64,000 nucleotides of DNA from Monocercomonoides exilis PA203. Lineage: Eukaryota; Protista; Preaxostyla. Under the pieces are notes generated by a model. The model did not search any database and was not told the DNA's origin. It worked only from the letters and a program-made list of their open reading frames with translations. Numbering within the stretch: the stretch's first letter is position 1; each line of letters begins with the position of its first letter. The stretch covers positions 62,001-126,000 of the forward strand of contig LSRY02000031.1 of the NCBI GenBank assembly GCA_001643675.2. Reading direction: 5' to 3'. This document shows, one piece after another, positions 1,114-46,025 of this stretch. The position numbers and the translations under genes were made by a program.

Positions 1114-3787
1114 GGCATAGGTGTAACTGCGTCCCTTTTGCAATTCTTGTTTTTAACAATTAATTTTATGATGCTTGAAAAGCAAAAATTATTTATAAAC
1201 TTTTGTATGGACCGATTTTTCGTAAAACTTTTTGTTTGTCGTGAAAAAATTTATTTTAAAAATGACCCATAAATATGAGTATTTGAATAAAATTTTTAAA
1301 ATCAAAAACAAATAAATCCTGAAAAATATCTTGAATGTCTCTAAATGCATTGTACACTTATATTTGTTTGATATTTTCACGAAAAATATAAATTTGAAAT
1401 TTAATTTATTTATATGCAATCATTTGATCAAACCCATATTTTAATTTTATTTATTTGGACAACTTTAATTTGACGGTGCGGGTTATGCAATGTTCGAACG
1501 TATGTATTTGTTGTTTCTATATGTGATCATTATCAAATGCAAATTATACCAATTGTGTTCGTGTCAGAATATCCTGTTTCTGCTTTTTCAATTGCTAATA
1601 CAAGTTTCAAAGAAAAATCTTTGCTTTCAAAATCTTTCATTTCATAAAATGCTGTTGTACAATTGACACATTTATTTTCTTTGCACAAGACTGAAATGTG
1701 AAGCCAACATGTATTGCAAAATGACAAAATCACGTATTCAACAATCTGTTTGCAATTTATTTTGTTTGGAACATTTGTTATTTACTCTTATATTTCGTAA
1801 AGTACAAGGAAAAGATCATTCCTTTAGGAAGGAATGCAGGAGTTTTGATATTGATACATAGAAGCTAAATTGAAGGGGCATTATCAGATAAGAGCAAAGA
1901 AGGAGGAGCACTGAAGATCGTTCTGAAGAATGGAGGATTTATGGCACTTGAAAATAGTTCATTTGTTGGATGTGTTTGTCAGAATGGGAGTGAGGGTGGA
2001 AAAGGAGGAGGGATTTATCTGGATTGCAGCTCAAATGGAGAAGCATTTCACCTTTCATCGATATCATTTTCTGAATGCTCAGCAACAGTTGGGAAGAACA
2101 TGTTTGTGAAGAGTGGGAATCTGGTGAACAGTGTGAATACAGAACGTTTTGCATTTGATTGCACAGATTACGTGGAGGATGGGAATGCATTTGTTGGAGA
2201 AGATGGGATTTGTGGAGAAATGGATCTTCGAGTGTTTCTTGTTGAAATGAAGGGAATGGAGGTTTGTGTGTCAATGGAGGGGTATGACACATTGGGATGT
2301 GGAAGTGAAAAATTCCCATGTGAATCGATGAAAAGTGGAATTGACCACATTGACATGAATGGAGGGGAAGGAGAAAGGAAAGTGAAGGTTAAAGATGAAG
2401 GGATAATTGAAGATATTTATTCTTTCACAGATGCACTTGCGATTGATGGAAGTGTGATTGATGAAGATGAAACCAAACACAAGCCTGTTCAGTTTAATGA
2501 GAGAATCAAAGGGAATTCAGCATTTGCTTCATCTGTTATTTCTTCAACTGCCTCGCTCATCTTGCTGTCTTTGAAGTTACAAATTCCAAGTCAATTTGCA
2601 CCAATCATGAATTCATTGATATCATCGAGTAATATTCTTCAATTTGAAAACTGTTTATTTGAAATCCAATCATCAACGACCATTCAATACTCATTGATAA
2701 CCACAACCAGTGGAAGTTGCACATTGATAGGATGCAGTTTAATGGGATCTTCATTTGTCAAATCACCATTGGTGATGGCTACTTCTGTTTTATTTGAAAG
2801 CAACAACTTTTCAAACATTAGGAACACTGGAAGTGGTGAAGAAGGAGGCGTTGCAAAAGTTACATTAAAAAATGATGAAAATTTGGCTATTAAATCAACA
2901 AATGCATCATCTTGTTCACTTTCATCGGGCAATGGAAAAGGAGGATTCATGTATTTGGATTGTCAAAATTGCTTTGTATGAAAGAAGTTCTGAATTATTT
3001 TCATTCATAATTTTATTTTCCGTTTTTTCTCACTTCTTCACCCAATTTTTGTTTTTTAAGATAAATGCGATTTCAACAAATACAAGCAATTAAAAGCAGT
3101 TTTGAAAGATAAAGAAATATAAATGAATATTATTTGCTTGAAAAAGTGAAGTGAAAGTCACAAAAGCGATCAATATTGTGAATAAAAAGATTAGGAACAC
3201 CAACACTGGATATTCAAATATTCGGGATGTGAACTTCACAGTAACATAGGGTTGAACAACTAATAAATATAAAATCACAAGAAATAACACAAAAATAAAA
3301 ATGATTCAAAACTTGATAAAAACAAACAAAGACATACATATATATTTAAATAAAAAAACCATTTCATATGATTTATAGCATGACTAACGATTGTTAATAA
3401 CATAATGTTCACAAAATGATTATTTACACTAATTAAAGTTATCCAAATAAATTAAATTAAAATATGGGTTTGATCAAATGATTGCATATAAATAAATTAA
3501 ATTTCAAATTTATATTTTTCGTGAAAATATCAAACAAATATAAGTGTACAATGCATTTAGAGACATTCAAGATATTTTTCAGGATTTATTTGTTTTTGAT
3601 TTTAAAAATTTTATTCAAATACTCATATTTATGGGTCATTTTTAAAATAAATTTTTTCACGACAAACAAAAAGTTTTACGAAAAATCGGTCCATACAAAA
3701 GTTTATAAATAATTTTTGCTTTTCAAGCATCATAAAATTAATTGTTAAAAACAAGAATTGCAAAAGGGACGCAGTTACACCTATGCC
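1114..3787 (+). mobile_element. Non-autonomous cargo-carrying TIR transposon, copy 1 (Pack-type, probably Merlin-mobilised)
   Basis: 357-bp TIRs (1114-1470 and 3431-3787) begin GGCATAGGTGTAACTGCG. Exact 8-bp TSD AAACCATG at 1106-1113 and 3788-3795. No transposase inside. Second copy at 36518-39190. Confidence 0.95.
1941..2981 (+). CDS. Captured fragment (346 aa) of the large Cys/Gly-rich surface-protein family
   Basis: Uninterrupted ORF with family motifs GGKGGGIYLDC, GCGSEKFPC and GKGGFMYLDCQNC. Its 3' end is colinear with 13010-13140. No signal peptide or TM segment. Confidence 0.7.
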   Translation: MALENSSFVGCVCQNGSEGGKGGGIYLDCSSNGEAFHLSSISFSECSATVGKNMFVKSGNLVNSVNTERFAFDCTDYVEDGNAFVGEDGICGEMDLRVFLVEMKGMEVCVSMEGYDTLGCGSEKFPCESMKSGIDHIDMNGGEGERKVKVKDEGIIEDIYSFTDALAIDGSVIDEDETKHKPVQFNERIKGNSAFASSVISSTASLILLSLKLQIPSQFAPIMNSLISSSNILQFENCLFEIQSSTTIQYSLITTTSGSCTLIGCSLMGSSFVKSPLVMATSVLFESNNFSNIRNTGSGEEGGVAKVTLKNDENLAIKSTNASSCSLSSGNGKGGFMYLDCQNCFV

Positions 3788-40202: not shown

Positions 40203-43200
40203 ATGGCGAGTGAGGAAAGTATGTCAATGTGCTCGACGTCTAGTGGAATGGCGGCAGAATATTCTCAAGCAGAAGGGTTCAGCAAGCTCGAAACAGTTGG
40301 CTTTTCAGTTTTTTTCCCTCTTTACGACCAGCCGAAGCATCCGAGTAAGACATGGGAAGTATTTGTATGGTCGGTAACAGTGCTGCAAATGGTCACGCTC
40401 AGTTTCTTTCGAATGGACACTTCGAGGCAGGATGTGAACAAGATTGCACGAGTTTGCGAGTTTTAACATTTGTGAAATTGAATTGTCGCTCAAAAAATAC
40501 TTTTTTTTCTTATTTTATGTTTTGCAAAACTCCGTCTGTATTTTTTTTATTTTTTTAAATGATTTTGCATGCTGGGTGCACATTTGGTTCAGTTTGTTTG
40601 CTTTGTTGACGGGACATCACTTGGATATCTGGCGGGGGAGTCGATTCCGATTGTGGCGATGGGGTGCCTGGGGTATTTTGTTTTGCTTGCTGCGTACTTG
40701 GTTGCGGTGGCGGCGTTTCAGGGGGTGATTTCGGGGACGCAGCCGTGGGTGATTTCGCTGCTGCGCTGGGTTGTGAATGTGACATACACCATCCTGTTTG
40801 TTCCGGTTATCTCCCTGTGCATAACGGCGTTTGACTGCTATGAGAGCGGGGGGCAGATTGTGCACAGGGGATTTGGAGGCAGTTGCACAGGCGACTTGGT
40901 GTCGATATTGGGATTTGTTGCGGGGATTGCGGTGCTGAGCTTGCAGCTGGTGTCTTCGTTTGTGGTGAAGAACATGATCTACAACCACAATCCGAAGCAC
41001 GGGGGGTTGTGGTCGTCGCCAAGCGGGGTGTGGCAAGGGGTGGAGTCGTGTCTTGTGTTTGGGTGTGTGTTTGCGATGAGGACGCTGATTGAATGGCCGT
41101 TCTGGCGCGGAGTGGTGACGGTTGGGGCTTCGGTGGGTATGGTGGTGTATTTTGTGTATGAGCAGCCGATATACAAACTAAGGGGAAACGTGCTGATGGG
41201 GAGCAAATGGTGCATGTTTGGGTGCTTGAGGCTTATTGATGAAATAGCATATGCGATAGAAGGAGCTACGGGCAACTGGATTGTGACGATTGTGCTTCAA
41301 GCGGTTGGGCTGGCGGCAGGAATTGTTTTGTGCATAGTGCTGTTGCCGAAGCTTGGTAAAATGTTCCGGAAAAAGAAATACCTGTTGAATGCATTTGAGC
41401 ATCAGCTGTCTGATATCTGCACCAAAAATCCTTCTTTGGCTCTGCCTCAGATGAAGAACCCCGAAAGAGTAGAGCCTTCTCTGAGCTTCATACAGGAGAA
41501 AGACTATCGTTCGATGATTCATTTGACATTTGCAGATTACGTGTACACACATGCACTGAAGACGAACATGAACAACAGCATGCTCTGCTTCCAGTATGCG
41601 TCGTTTCTGTCTGCCTACCGCAAGAACTACATGAAAGCGAACACGCTCATCCAAAAAGCCCGGTCGCTTTCTCCAGGCGTGTTTCTGAACTTTGTGCTGT
41701 TCTGCAAGGCGAAAGAGAACGGGGGAAGGACAAATGGAGATAGCCGGAACGGGACTGGGGACATGAACTCGTTTGCGTTCACGTCTCTTGTGGGGAAGGC
41801 GAAGAGGCACCACGAGCTGGCGGTGAGTGCGATGAAGGAGTTTTTTGAGAACATGACAGCGATCCACCCGGATTACAAGGCGGTTCCTGTTCTGCTGGAC
41901 ATGATTGTGAAGAACGAAGAGATTGCGCGAAAGAGCTACGAAGAGCTGATTTCGTCGCACAGGCAAAACTCGGAAGTGCTCAGGAGTTATGCGCGACTGC
42001 TTTTGGACATCTACAACGAAGAGGACGAGGCAGAGTTAATTCTGAACCGAGCAGATCTGATTGAAGAGGAATCTGTCGTGCATATTCAATCTTTATCCCG
42101 CACAAATACTGCCACTTTGATAGATGCTTCATATCCAATGGGAAATACAAGCGAATCAAAAAACGAAAAGATTGATGGAGAATTAAAGAGAGCCAGCACA
42201 GCAGGTGATTTTGTAACAGAATACGAGTCAAATTTCACACGTTCGCTGAGTCGTTTTAGCTTTGAAAATTCTGCTGGAAGTGCAAATGAGGATGCAAATG
42301 CTAATAAAGGAACTGAATGCAAAGAAGTGAAAGAAGCAGCATCTTGTGAACAGCAAAAACTGGAAGGAGAATCAGAAGTTCATACAAAAAAAGAGTTGCA
42401 ATGGCATCAATCATCTAACGAGTTAAAAAAACACCATACGTTGAATCAGAAGAATAAAAGAAAGAAGAAGAAGAAGGCGACAGCAATTACCGATCTGATA
42501 ATGGGAAATAATGGTAAACTCAATAGTTTTCAGAGCAATTACAACAAATTAAAATACACAGAGATAACTTTGCATTCTTTAAATGTTGCAGTACTTATAT
42601 CAGCGCTTATTGTGTACAAGACTATAACAGACAAATACCAGGACAACCTGCAAACGCTACGAAATGTGTGCGACTTGTCGTATTACACTGCCCGCTCAGC
42701 TGCGATCGCATACAGCTTTTTTGTGTATGACCAAAAGTTGAATTTCACTGATCCACCAACGGCGGATGAATGGCCATCAGGAATTATTCAGAAGAAGGAT
42801 CTGATGAACATTATGAAGGAGACATCAGACAATTTGGCAACAATGCTTGGCCGAATACATCAGTCAACAGAGAACATCGAAGTGTGGGAGACAGCAGACG
42901 TTAACACGTACCTATTCACGCTCACCACCAAAAACGAGACGCAGCCAGATGGAAGTGTGGATGAGGTGTTGGACACCAAAAGCCAAATCCTGCACTCAAC
43001 GTCAATGTTAGAGGTTATAGCAACGGTTTCTCAAATGATGCATCATCTGTATCTTACGAATGTTTCTTCACGTCCACAAGATCATGAGTATTTATCAAAC
43101 ATTCAGTATATGGTGTTCAATTGCCCCGTGCCTATATTGGATGGAGCAAAAAGAGTTATCTTTTACTATTATGAAATTTTGAATGAAGAATGCTTTGAAA

Positions 43201-46025
43201 TTATGGCAACGTTTACAATCATTATTTCGTCATTTCTAACGCCACTTACGATCATACAACTTGTGATCTATGTCCTTTTCACCAAAAAATCAGTGACGAA
43301 TCGGATGAAGGCGTATCAGATATTGCTGGATGTGCCAAAAAGCAAGATGCATAGCGTGATAAGCCGACTTATGAGAGATGACGATGCAGACGACGACTTT
43401 TCGATCAACGTTGAGATGGGAGAGATGCAAGAAACAAAGACATACGACAGCTTCTGCGACAATAAAAACGATTTTGTTGAAGAACCAGAGACTTCATCTG
43501 CGCGTGAAGAAACAGAGGGAAATGATCAAAACGACAATGAAAAGAAAAATGCAAAAGGAAGCAACAAAAACTCGTTGTCTTCGCTGAAAATGAAGGCTGC
43601 TATGAAACATGATTTGACTGAAATAGAGATTATCAATGCGAACTCAACGTCTTCTATTCTTCCTGGTGAAAGTTCTTCAGACGAGCCAATGATCGGTACG
43701 CCTTTATCTCCTGCATCTTCAAAGTCTCTATTTGTCGAACCAATTGATTCAACTGCTTCTACAACTTCAACAACTACATCATCAGGATTCAATTTGCATT
43801 CCACAAAAACAGGAGAGAATATTAGCGGAAAGCAAGCAGTCGGACAGAATGTGGGAACAAGATCATCATCTCAATCATTGCTGTTGAATGAGAATTCCAC
43901 CGCAAGTAGAGCAAAAAACGAGTCTGAATTAGCAACAAGCGAACGCCATTCCAACACCTTAAAAAATGATTCTTCACTTGCTGAACAAATGGGAATAAAA
44001 ACATTTGGAGCTGGAATTGTTGGACAAGAGATAAGAATGACCAAAAATACCGAAGATGGCGTTGGGCTGAATGGAGCAAACATGATGAGTACAGGAAACA
44101 TATCAAAGGCATCACTTAATCCGATGCTTGGCTGGAACAACAATTCAGGTATACTGATGATCAAGCCGCTAAAGGCCAATCAGGACGATGATCTATCAAG
44201 CATTTTCCAAACGCAATCACAGCCGTTTCTACCTTCTCTTTTTGCCACCAGCAGAAATCAGTCCTTCTCAACGCTGGCACCCTCAGCCCCAATTTCAGCG
44301 CAACACACAATGTCTGACTACGGCTGTAGCTCAGTCTACAACTCCCTGCAATTGCTGCCTCCTCTTGCTCCAGCCAGTCTGTGCCAGCAGAACAGAGCAC
44401 TGATGTGCAGTCAGAATGCTCTTTTGTCGCAGTTGGAAATGCTGTCAAGGACTTCAACGGCTTACGATCTTCATATGAAAACCGAACAGAATTCATTGGA
44501 TAGTAACGAGTCTGCTGTTCAAGAGCAGAAGCCTCAGAGCAACATTCCAGAAATAAAATACAAGTTCGATGACGAAGATTTGGAGGAATCAGAAAAAGAC
44601 AAGCAAAGAGGGTTGATTAGAAATGCAGTTGACGATGCAGCTTGGGAAGAACAAGTGGAAAAGGAGATAGAGAAACACGAAGCAGCATACAAACAGTTGC
44701 CACGTCCGATATCAAAATTAGTTGTTTTTACTGTTTGCTTTTCAACATTTATTGGTACAGCCACAATCGTATCAACGGATGTTGTTGCGTGTTATTATGT
44801 TGCTGATTATAAACCGACGTCCGCCAACATCATCGTATCCGGAATGCGTGCTTCTATTCTGTTCCAGATCCACTTTTTGCTCACATCCATCCTGCAACCA
44901 ATACCGATGCTGAAAACAGACCAGTCAATCACGTTCCCAACGTCAAGTAATCCAGTCATGCACAACTCTTCCCACTGTTCTGGTTCTCCAACTGTTGCCC
45001 GTGACATGCTTGTTCCGATGTCTAACTATTTTCAGGCAATGCATCATGACTGCCATTTTGGAGATTCAGATTTTTCGAGCATGAATGACAGAATATACGA
45101 TACGGTTCCTGTCTCTCGCATGACGACAAAGTTTAATGTGGAGACTCTGCTGCGAAAGGCTGACTGCTACTTGGCTGAATCTGAAGATTGCTCACGAGTT
45201 GATCCAAATCGAATGTATGGAATTAAAGGGACTATTTATGGACTCACAACACTTATTGCACGAATGAGGATAAATTTGGAGAGGATATCAAAGATGGAAG
45301 TTGAAAACATCACGTTTACTAACCCCGAAGCTCGCTTTGTTTCGAATGCTCTTCGAACTGATATTGTTGAAGGGATTGAGAAAATGACGAACATGATTTT
45401 GACCGAAGGAAAAGAAGAAGTTCAGGAATCAGTTACAATCTTAACCATTGTGATTGTACTGTTCTCTATTTTATTCATTATTTCGATGTTTGGAAATTCA
45501 AGGACATGGACGATTGAAGTGACTTTTGTTGAGAATGTGTCTCACAAGTTGCGTGAACTGCTTCCAATCAAAGAAGGCGAAAAGGAGATATTTATGGTGT
45601 CGTCGATGGTGACAGGGCATGAATCATTCGACAAAGGAAGAGAAGCAATTCTTGACGCTGCACAGCAATTGTTAACATCTGTTAATCAATATGAACAACC
45701 AGAAGTTGTGATGGATGCGTTCTATCAAGTGACATCTACAGCATTGGCAGTCTTCAATGAGGAGGAGAAGGAGATGGAAGCGAAGAACTATACGAACATT
45801 GAGAAGCACAAAAGAGAACATTTATTGTTGAGGCAGCGTCTGACACTGATTGGAGACCAACTCCGCTCAAAGAACGATGCGGTGAAAGCTGTCGGAAAGA
45901 GAAAACTTGTTTCGCTTTTTGACATGCACTTCACAGATGAAGATATCACCTTTGCAGACGCTGCTTATGGAATTGATTTTTCGAATCAGAAAAATGTTGA
46001 AATTGAGAACAGCAGTAATCTGTGA
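40203..46025 (+). CDS. TmcB/TmcC-like polytopic membrane protein with TPR-like region and C-terminal hemerythrin-like domain, ~1893 aa
   Basis: Exon 1 (40203-40451) and exon 2 (40593-46025) join via a phase-0 GT-AG intron. About 9 N-terminal TM helices, YEELISSH..NSEVLRSYARLLLDIYNE TPR-like segment, two paired TM hairpins with extracellular loops, and a C-terminal FNEEEKEM..Y..HKREH..HFTDED. Confidence 0.85.

Follow-up and report, generated by a model that had tools for sequence, protein, structure and literature searches.

What does a hemerythrin domain do once it has lost the half of its di-iron site that binds oxygen? The question is raised by the end of MONOS_11592, a gene in a 64,000-nucleotide stretch of the Monocercomonoides exilis PA203 genome (GenBank assembly GCA_001643675.2, contig LSRY02000031.1, positions 62,001 to 126,000, forward strand; hereafter the window). 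In hemerythrin, three His residues bind Fe1, two His bind Fe2, a Glu and an Asp bridge the irons, and O2 is bound at Fe2 (PMC9388753). A first-pass annotation of the window had noticed a peptide at 45594-45965 (+ strand) with hemerythrin spacing, in which the Fe1 and bridging ligands were kept and both His residues of Fe2 were lost. The translation of these positions is identical to the quoted peptide, and the ligand roles cited by the annotation agree with the published ones (PMC9388753). We find that the segment has a hemerythrin fold and that its ligand state is an ancient, selected trait of one clade in a family of about 60 M. exilis genes. Our preferred reading, to which we give a probability of roughly 0.45, is that the tail binds one metal ion, located at the Fe1 site, has an Arg filling the Fe2 position, and serves as a cytosolic sensor or transducer module.

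Coordinates are positions of the 64-kb window, which lies on contig 27, and domain residues are counted from the Glu codon at 45585. Genome searches covered the 82.3-Mb, 101-contig M. exilis assembly. The peptide lies at the end of an 1818-codon open frame, 40569-46025 (+), which codes for exon 2 of MONOS_11592 with 100% identity. MONOS_11592 (database record P0001) is an 1893-aa "uncharacterized protein" of M. exilis, whose sole domain on record is PF25474; the spliced protein was taken from P0001 as it stands.

A hemerythrin fold at the end of MONOS_11592

Searched as a single sequence, the last 143 residues matched positions 10-120 of the 127-position Pfam profile PF01814 with an E-value of 0.006, but their score of 17.5 bits falls short of the 25.3-bit cut-off; phmmer against the PDB returned designed helical repeats only. 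Both results would suit a chance resemblance, in which a generic helical tail happens to have hemerythrin-like spacing. Because the phmmer search gave nothing but designed repeats, we turned to profiles built from two alignments. A1 contains 42 paralog tails, and A2 contains the 25 paralogs with the Arg/x pattern, in which Arg replaces the first Fe2 His and the second is also lost. The A1 profile reached bacteriohemerythrin 4xpw (E 9e-19) and the hemerythrin (Hr) domain of DcrH (E 2.6e-15), and the A2 profile, made of Arg/x copies only, reached 4xpw over its full length (E 1.4e-8). All 49 fetched loci were united in one family by jackhmmer, and some paralogs exceed the PF01814 cut-off.

Structure prediction gave the same answer. 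With A1 as input, AlphaFold2 (AF2) produced a four-helix bundle with a predicted local distance difference test score (pLDDT) of 89.6 and a predicted template-modelling (TM) score of 0.81, its helices spanning residues 13-34, 39-66, 72-93 and 98-141, the last one kinked. The top PDB matches in Foldseek were DcrH-Hr structures (TM scores 0.78 and 0.84; root-mean-square deviation 2.0 Å over about 130 columns), and worm hemerythrins and McHr came next; the Foldseek E-values are weak (3.5e-3), though the TM score of 0.84 and the ranking are clear. Together, the profile matches and the AF2 and Foldseek results establish hemerythrin homology and fold for the MONOS_11592 tail, and its last ~130 folded residues form a bacterial-type (DcrH-like) hemerythrin four-helix bundle. 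That the tail is a hemerythrin domain had been supposed by the first-pass annotation. With every top structural match a hemerythrin, solved bacteriohemerythrins reached full-length, and paralogs passing the Pfam cut-off and joining by jackhmmer, we regard chance resemblance as vanishingly improbable.

Ligands were assigned from hidden Markov model (HMM) alignments to 4xpw. The rows below refer also to clade B, the 38-sequence Arg/x clade defined in the next section.

45585-45974, + strand: hemerythrin-fold four-helix bundle, domain residues 1-130, from AF2, Foldseek and profiles; it encloses 45594-45965
45639-45641, + strand: Arg19 (AGA), His25 equivalent, Fe2 ligand lost; Arg is invariant in A2 and present in 35/38 clade B sequences
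45750-45752, + strand: Val56, His54 equivalent (the His of HFxxEE in 4xpw), Fe2 ligand lost
45762-45764, + strand: Glu60, Glu58 equivalent, bridge kept; invariant in the 42 paralogs and in clade B
45807-45821, + strand: His75-x3-His79, His73 and His77 equivalents, Fe1 ligands kept (codons 45807-45809 and 45819-45821); invariant in A1, A2 and clade B
45831-45839, + strand: Arg-Gln-Arg (RQR) motif of helix 3, a clade B hallmark; invariant in A2
45927-45944, + strand: His115-Phe-x3-Asp120, equivalents of H101 (Fe1; codon 45927-45929) and D106 (bridge; codon 45942-45944)

The alignment thus bore out the residue assignments made at first pass, with Arg and Val in place of H25 and H54, and E58, H73, H77, H101 and D106 retained. 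With five of seven canonical ligands, the MONOS_11592 tail does not carry the ligand set of an O2-binding hemerythrin or bacteriohemerythrin. In clade B, position 56 is variable (V19, Q6, T4, I3, A2, Y2, E1, H1), and H115, F116 and D120 are invariant. The Gln and the second Arg of the RQR motif are found in 38/38 clade B sequences; clade A, the other clade of oxymonad domains introduced below, has [L][R/K][K/R] there.

Two residues were considered as substitute ligands and rejected: His12, the sole other His of the domain, occupies a position that is not conserved, and Asp113 stands two residues from His115 and hence faces away on the helix.

One ligand state within a large receptor family

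The first-pass annotation had treated this tail as a single curiosity. Instead, it is one member of a large family. Six-frame searches of the genome found 69 loci with the TPR_TmcB domain (PF25474) and 63 distinct loci with an Hr tail. Fifty-nine of the 69 TPR_TmcB genes are paired with an Hr tail on the same strand, at a median spacing of 3.9 kb, and only four tails have no detected upstream TPR, three of them in short or broken frames. All 19 PF01814 matches in the genome fall inside such long frames or fragments of them, and neither these matches nor the six-frame search yielded a stand-alone hemerythrin in the M. exilis genome.

A census of the tails gave about 31 copies with Arg/x and E-H-H-H-D, nearly all of them with Arg-Gln-Arg on helix 3, about 15 His/x copies that have lost the H54 equivalent alone, eight canonical H-H-E-H-H-H-D copies, two Asn/x copies, three copies in which the H101 equivalent has become Asp or Glu, and two that are clearly decayed. 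Nearly every copy keeps the Fe1 and bridging ligands, and the variation falls mainly on the two positions that serve Fe2 alone. The Arg/x tail is a family trait, one of several ligand states that occur among about 60 genes. The canonical and His/x paralogs (for example C35:289542-289955 and C47:119094-119504) share with MONOS_11592 both the domain family and the arrangement of TPR_TmcB followed by a C-terminal Hr-like tail. The eight canonical copies differ from it in that they keep H-HxxxE-HxxxH-HxxxxD, pass the Pfam cut-off, belong to clade A, have a Trp and Ile/Val pocket and lack the RQR motif.

Two groups of copies stand apart. In L044 (C91:576509), L049 (C25:1074464) and L051 (C2:778087), the H101 equivalent is Asp or Glu and both Fe2 His residues are kept, which is the opposite type of variant. 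The tails of L027 (C25:860519-860896), L033 (C47:218999) and L013 (C60:352071) are broken or truncated, in short frames or with in-frame stops, and these family members are probably pseudogenes or fragments.

Could the missing His residues of MONOS_11592 simply reflect random decay of the domain in a redundant or dying paralog? The size of the family and its broken or strongly degenerate copies (L027, L033, L039 and frames with stops) lend this idea some weight, and the distribution of the pattern bears on it directly. An exhaustive profile search returned 7634 matches at E ≤0.001, 25 of them at E ≤1e-30. Arg/x together with RQR was found in Blattamonas nauphoetae proteins annotated as TmcB/TmcC (P0014, P0025, P0029, P0035, P0047, P0060, P0072 and P0073), in the Streblomastix strix proteins P0027 and P0031, and in JGI/IMG metagenome fragments labelled "hemerythrin". 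In an IQ-TREE phylogeny of 77 domains, computed with the two trait columns removed, the oxymonad domains split in two: clade A, with the canonical and His/x copies (support 95/97), and clade B, with the Arg/x copies (98/89). Clade B contains all three genera, Monocercomonoides, Blattamonas and Streblomastix, and the Arg state is therefore older than their divergence.

The constraint on clade B was measured on 38 sequences with a median pairwise identity of 38% and a minimum of 19%. Only nine of 140 columns are invariant (Asp16, Glu60, His75, His79, Gln84, Arg85, His115, Phe116 and Asp120), and these include the full set of five retained ligands (hypergeometric P about 3e-7). Across 16 close paralogs, the ratio of nonsynonymous to synonymous substitution rates (dN/dS) of the domain is about 0.11, with dS saturated, and the Arg19 codon is AGA or CGA, in most copies more than one step from the His codons CAY. 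A pattern shared in this way by three oxymonad genera has been kept by selection and is not decay. The same ligand state in about 31 paralogs and two other genera, all in one clade, the low dN/dS, the intact 1893-aa frame and the invariance of the five ligands leave random decay with next to no probability, and the loss of the Fe2 His residues is clean, ancient and under selection, random decay being excluded. In this respect the clean loss proposed at first pass was upheld.

The Arg/x state is also recurrent rather than unique to oxymonads, since two bacterial stand-alone hemerythrins, P0154 (next to uvrC) and P0130 (beside the gene for the small subunit of exonuclease VII), have Arg at H25, Tyr or Thr at H54 and the E-H-H-H-D set. 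Both are short single-domain bacterial proteins, a difference from MONOS_11592. P0154 groups with canonical bacterial hemerythrin (96/83), which indicates an independent origin, and the placement of P0130 is unsure; the bacterial pattern appears to be convergent with the oxymonad one. These two bacterial proteins, of 167 and 196 aa, are encoded at L067:1128-1631 and L068:854-1444.

Several other sequences in the search are worth recording. P0014 of B. nauphoetae (3353 aa) has two Hr-like domains, one of His/Gln type at 1496-1634 and one of Arg/Val type at 3194-3331, and is either two neighbouring receptor genes fused in annotation or a true tandem. The metagenomic protein P0125 (138 aa) combines canonical ligands with Arg-Gln-Arg on helix 3 and adjoins the oxymonad Arg clade with moderate support (92/70); it is possibly near the bacterial donor lineage. 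Bacterial tandem-hemerythrin proteins (P0085, P0088, P0095, P0105, P0116, P0122, P0126 and P0127) commonly have Gln or Asn at the H73 equivalent, a ligand of Fe1 (H-H-E-Q-H-H-D), which makes this a further variant that recurs.

Candidate occupants of the remaining half-site

What, then, does the conserved half-site hold? Fe2 is unlikely to bind because it would have no His of its own and a cationic Arg replaces one of them. In that case the simplest role for the invariant three His, Glu and Asp would be to coordinate one metal at the Fe1 position. From the His25 position, an extended Arg side chain could reach roughly the former place of Fe2 and pair with the two carboxylates. The surroundings of the site have changed as well. 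Four residues before the H101 equivalent, 18/21 clade A sequences have Trp, whereas clade B has Leu; three residues before it, at the position that aligns with Leu114 of McHr, clade A has Ile, Val or Leu, whereas 34/38 clade B sequences have Phe; and one residue after it, Ile or Val in clade A contrasts with Phe in 38/38 clade B sequences. These substitutions suggest that the former Fe2/O2 pocket has been filled in.

We therefore favor the one-metal reading. On this reading the clade B domain would no longer form an O2-binding di-iron site; a single metal ion, most likely Fe, would sit at the Fe1 position, held by three His, Glu and Asp; and the guanidinium of Arg19 would occupy the vacated Fe2 position, paired with the former bridging carboxylates. 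For this last geometry we infer the arrangement purely from what the side chain could reach. An Arg/x site of this kind would be unable to bind O2 in the manner of hemerythrin, and the domain would, from the cytosol, report metal occupancy (iron availability) or oxidation state.

The same features admit a metal-free bundle, in which the His, Glu, Asp and Arg residues form a buried network of hydrogen bonds and salt bridges that stabilises the four helices, and these would serve the end of the receptor as an adaptor or for dimerisation. In the alignment, a cationic Arg beside two carboxylates could neutralise them without any metal, the bulkier Phe residues appear to fill the pocket, and Hr-like subdomains that have no metal centre are known, BTSL2 H2 being an example (PMC12022348). 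In BTSL2 H2, however, the ligands are absent (PMC12022348, Fig. 1 legend), whereas clade B, with its median identity of 38%, keeps the five remaining ligands without exception, and they make up most of only nine invariant columns. Three buried, invariant His residues would also be unusual in a protein with no metal. We consider this arrangement rather unlikely, at something over one chance in five.

A site that is still binuclear is less probable again. Its second iron, more open and labile, would be held by the two bridging carboxylates together with water or a further side chain, and the domain would act as a fast-autoxidising redox or iron-availability sensor. In the P1B-5 ATPase, the motif H-HxxxE-HxE-HxxxxD is altered and yet two irons are bound (PMC9388753), and the roughly 15 paralogs that have lost H54 alone plausibly remain binuclear. 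For the Arg/x tails, a second iron would be left with no protein ligand of its own and with a positively charged Arg at its His site, and at the pocket-facing positions of clade B no His, Asp, Glu or Cys has newly become conserved.

Some observations weigh against the one-metal reading. A metal-free polar network with Arg could be what keeps the conserved His, Glu and Asp in place, and two carboxylates and water might bind a labile second metal. Three paralogs nested in clade B, L024 (C2:90942), L026 (C58:1199961) and L029 (C58:1644253), carry His at position 19 and still lack the H54 equivalent. They look like Arg-to-His reversals, and because of them Arg at position 19 is not absolutely required. 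The probable cytosolic placement of the Hr tail is drawn from a weak positive-inside bias and from analogy. Finally, we know of no output enzyme domain in TmcB-like proteins.

Receptor architecture and its possible use in sensing

The Hr tail is fused to a TmcB-like polytopic membrane protein, as the first-pass annotation had proposed. The features of the gene outside the Hr domain are as follows.

40203-40451, + strand: exon 1 of MONOS_11592, 83 codons, with ATG at 40203; matches the start of P0001, with a GT donor at 40452
40452-40592, + strand: intron, 141 nt, GT...AG (donor GTTTGC, acceptor ...CAG); exon 2 resumes with FVCFVDGTS, as in P0001
40593-46025, + strand: exon 2 to the stop codon (TGA 46023-46025), the remainder of the 1893-aa protein
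41757-42074, + strand: TPR_TmcB domain (PF25474), hmmscan E 1.7e-15, 57.5 bits against a cut-off of 27, residues 397-502 of the open reading frame (ORF)
44718-44789, + strand: penultimate transmembrane helix, a hydropathy peak at P0001 1459-1482; begins a 60-residue helix in the AF2 model
44790-45431, + strand: inter-helix domain of ~215 aa, probably extracellular, from AF2 of the last 454 aa (pLDDT 84), with a near-invariant Cys pair
45432-45488, + strand: last transmembrane helix, the strongest hydropathy peak (2.92), P0001 1697-1715; within model helix 234-300

The ATG of MONOS_11592 lies 366 nt upstream of the first ATG of the long ORF, and the first eight codons of the mechanical ORF are intronic.

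MONOS_11592 is TmcB/TmcC-like in that PF25474 exceeds its curated cut-off and the protein is a polytopic membrane protein. A Kyte-Doolittle plot of P0001 (19-residue window) has about 11-12 hydropathy peaks of at least 1.5. About six or seven membrane segments form an N-terminal block, which is followed by the TPR_TmcB loop, two membrane segments flanking a 188-aa loop, a 481-aa low-complexity loop and the C-terminal part. The low-complexity loop, rich in Ser, Thr, Asn and Gln, spans P0001 978-1458 (window ~43500-44700) between membrane segments. TPR_TmcB is named after the "tiny macrocysts" proteins of Dictyostelium. MONOS_11592 resembles the TmcB/TmcC family in having this domain, well over cut-off, after an N-terminal polytopic block, and differs from it in the Hr tail, which among the sequences looked up is seen only in oxymonads.

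The relatives of such proteins had been said at first pass usually to carry PAS sensors, and this statement found no support. In a Pfam scan of the 1818-aa frame, TPR_TmcB alone was over cut-off, and MCP, HAMP, GGDEF and PAS were not found. Neighbours in the Atlas were TmcB-like clusters of Parabasalia, Preaxostyla and Heterolobosea that carried only TPR_TmcB, with scores below 0.9 that make them a lead only. The usual C-terminal module of the family in M. exilis is the Hr-like domain itself.

The C-terminal part was modelled with AF2 on the last 454 residues, with 34 paralogs in the alignment. In this model, a membrane helix runs into a long helix, followed by a helical and alpha-beta domain of ~215 aa and a second long helix that contains the last membrane segment; a short linker then leads to the Hr bundle. 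Both hydropathy and AF2 place the Hr domain C-terminal, past the last membrane helix. Two Cys residues of the inter-helix domain, C169 and C177, are at least 90% conserved among paralogs (alignment A3), and conserved Gly and Asp residues also occur there. Foldseek with the 454-aa model found no convincing PDB match for this domain and returned only low-TM flagellar junction proteins; it may be a true ligand-binding ectodomain. This layout puts the Hr tail on the side of the TPR loop, probably the cytosol; the side of the membrane is drawn from a weak positive-inside bias of Lys and Arg and from the conserved Cys pair in the inter-helix domain.

The nearest known parallel is DcrH of Desulfovibrio vulgaris, a methyl-accepting chemotaxis protein (MCP) with a C-terminal cytoplasmic Hr domain (PMC9388753; PDB 2avk, 2awc and 3waq). 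Both proteins are membrane receptors that end in an Hr tail and have two membrane helices with a domain between them; both come from anaerobes, M. exilis being the anaerobic gut protist that the first-pass annotation had guessed at; and DcrH-Hr is the best structural and a strong profile match. They differ in that the seven ligands of DcrH are complete and its di-iron site binds O2, whereas MONOS_11592 has no Fe2 His. The HAMP and MCP domains of DcrH are likewise not found in MONOS_11592, whose host protein is a eukaryotic TmcB-like polytopic protein, so that the DcrH-type arrangement of Hr fused to an output domain (MCP, GGDEF or HD-GYP) does not describe it.

For DcrH, redox-dependent ordering of the N-terminal loop has been proposed as the transducer (PMC9388753). 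The corresponding loop of the MONOS_11592 domain is joined to the last membrane helix by a short linker, and its Met8 and Thr10 are invariant in A2. If the one-metal reading is right, this loop and the neighbouring membrane helix would relay a signal to the remainder of the receptor, or in the reverse direction, and the paralogs with seven or six ligands would cover O2 and redox sensing. Clade B tails may in this sense be natural mononuclear hemerythrins, with three His and two carboxylates on one metal and Arg in place of the second iron, that together with the six- and seven-ligand paralogs form a graded array of about 60 membrane receptors for iron, redox state and oxygen; we offer this broader proposal tentatively, at a chance of about one in three.

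The P1B-5 ATPase C-terminal domain, BTSL2 H2 and the FBXL5/BTS iron sensors are likewise Hr folds that act as regulatory modules on larger proteins with non-canonical ligand sets (PMC9388753; PMC12022348). In the P1B-5 domain, in contrast, an Fe1 ligand is changed and two irons are still bound, and in BTSL2 H2 the ligands and the metal are wholly absent. In the literature examined we found no described variant that loses exactly the two Fe2-only His with the other five ligands fixed, no description of a TmcB-hemerythrin fusion and nothing relevant on the function of the TmcB or "tiny macrocysts" family. The M. exilis genome paper does no more than name "hemerythrin" as one of the oxygen-stress genes that the organism obtained from bacteria (PMC6759080); this sentence is the sole mention of an oxymonad hemerythrin that we found in the literature, the word being absent from the Preaxostyla genomics paper. 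Hr tails on receptors (DcrH), altered ligand sets (P1B-5) and metal-free subdomains (BTSL2 H2) were thus already known, and what appears to be new is the removal of exactly the Fe2 His residues with the rest fixed.

M. exilis is a model eukaryote without mitochondria, and to our knowledge the sensing of oxygen, redox state or iron in anaerobic gut protists is largely unknown. The roughly 60 receptor-like genes reported here form a previously undescribed family to which every hemerythrin domain detected in the M. exilis genome belongs, and about half of them fix an Fe1 half-site plus Arg, a ligand state not known from any characterised hemerythrin. For bioinorganic chemistry, they provide a natural test case of what half a di-iron site does. 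For protistology, they offer concrete candidates for O2, iron and redox sensing, with the canonical paralogs as built-in controls. If the proposed reading is true, neither this mononuclear type of hemerythrin site nor such a graded oxymonad sensing system would have been described before.

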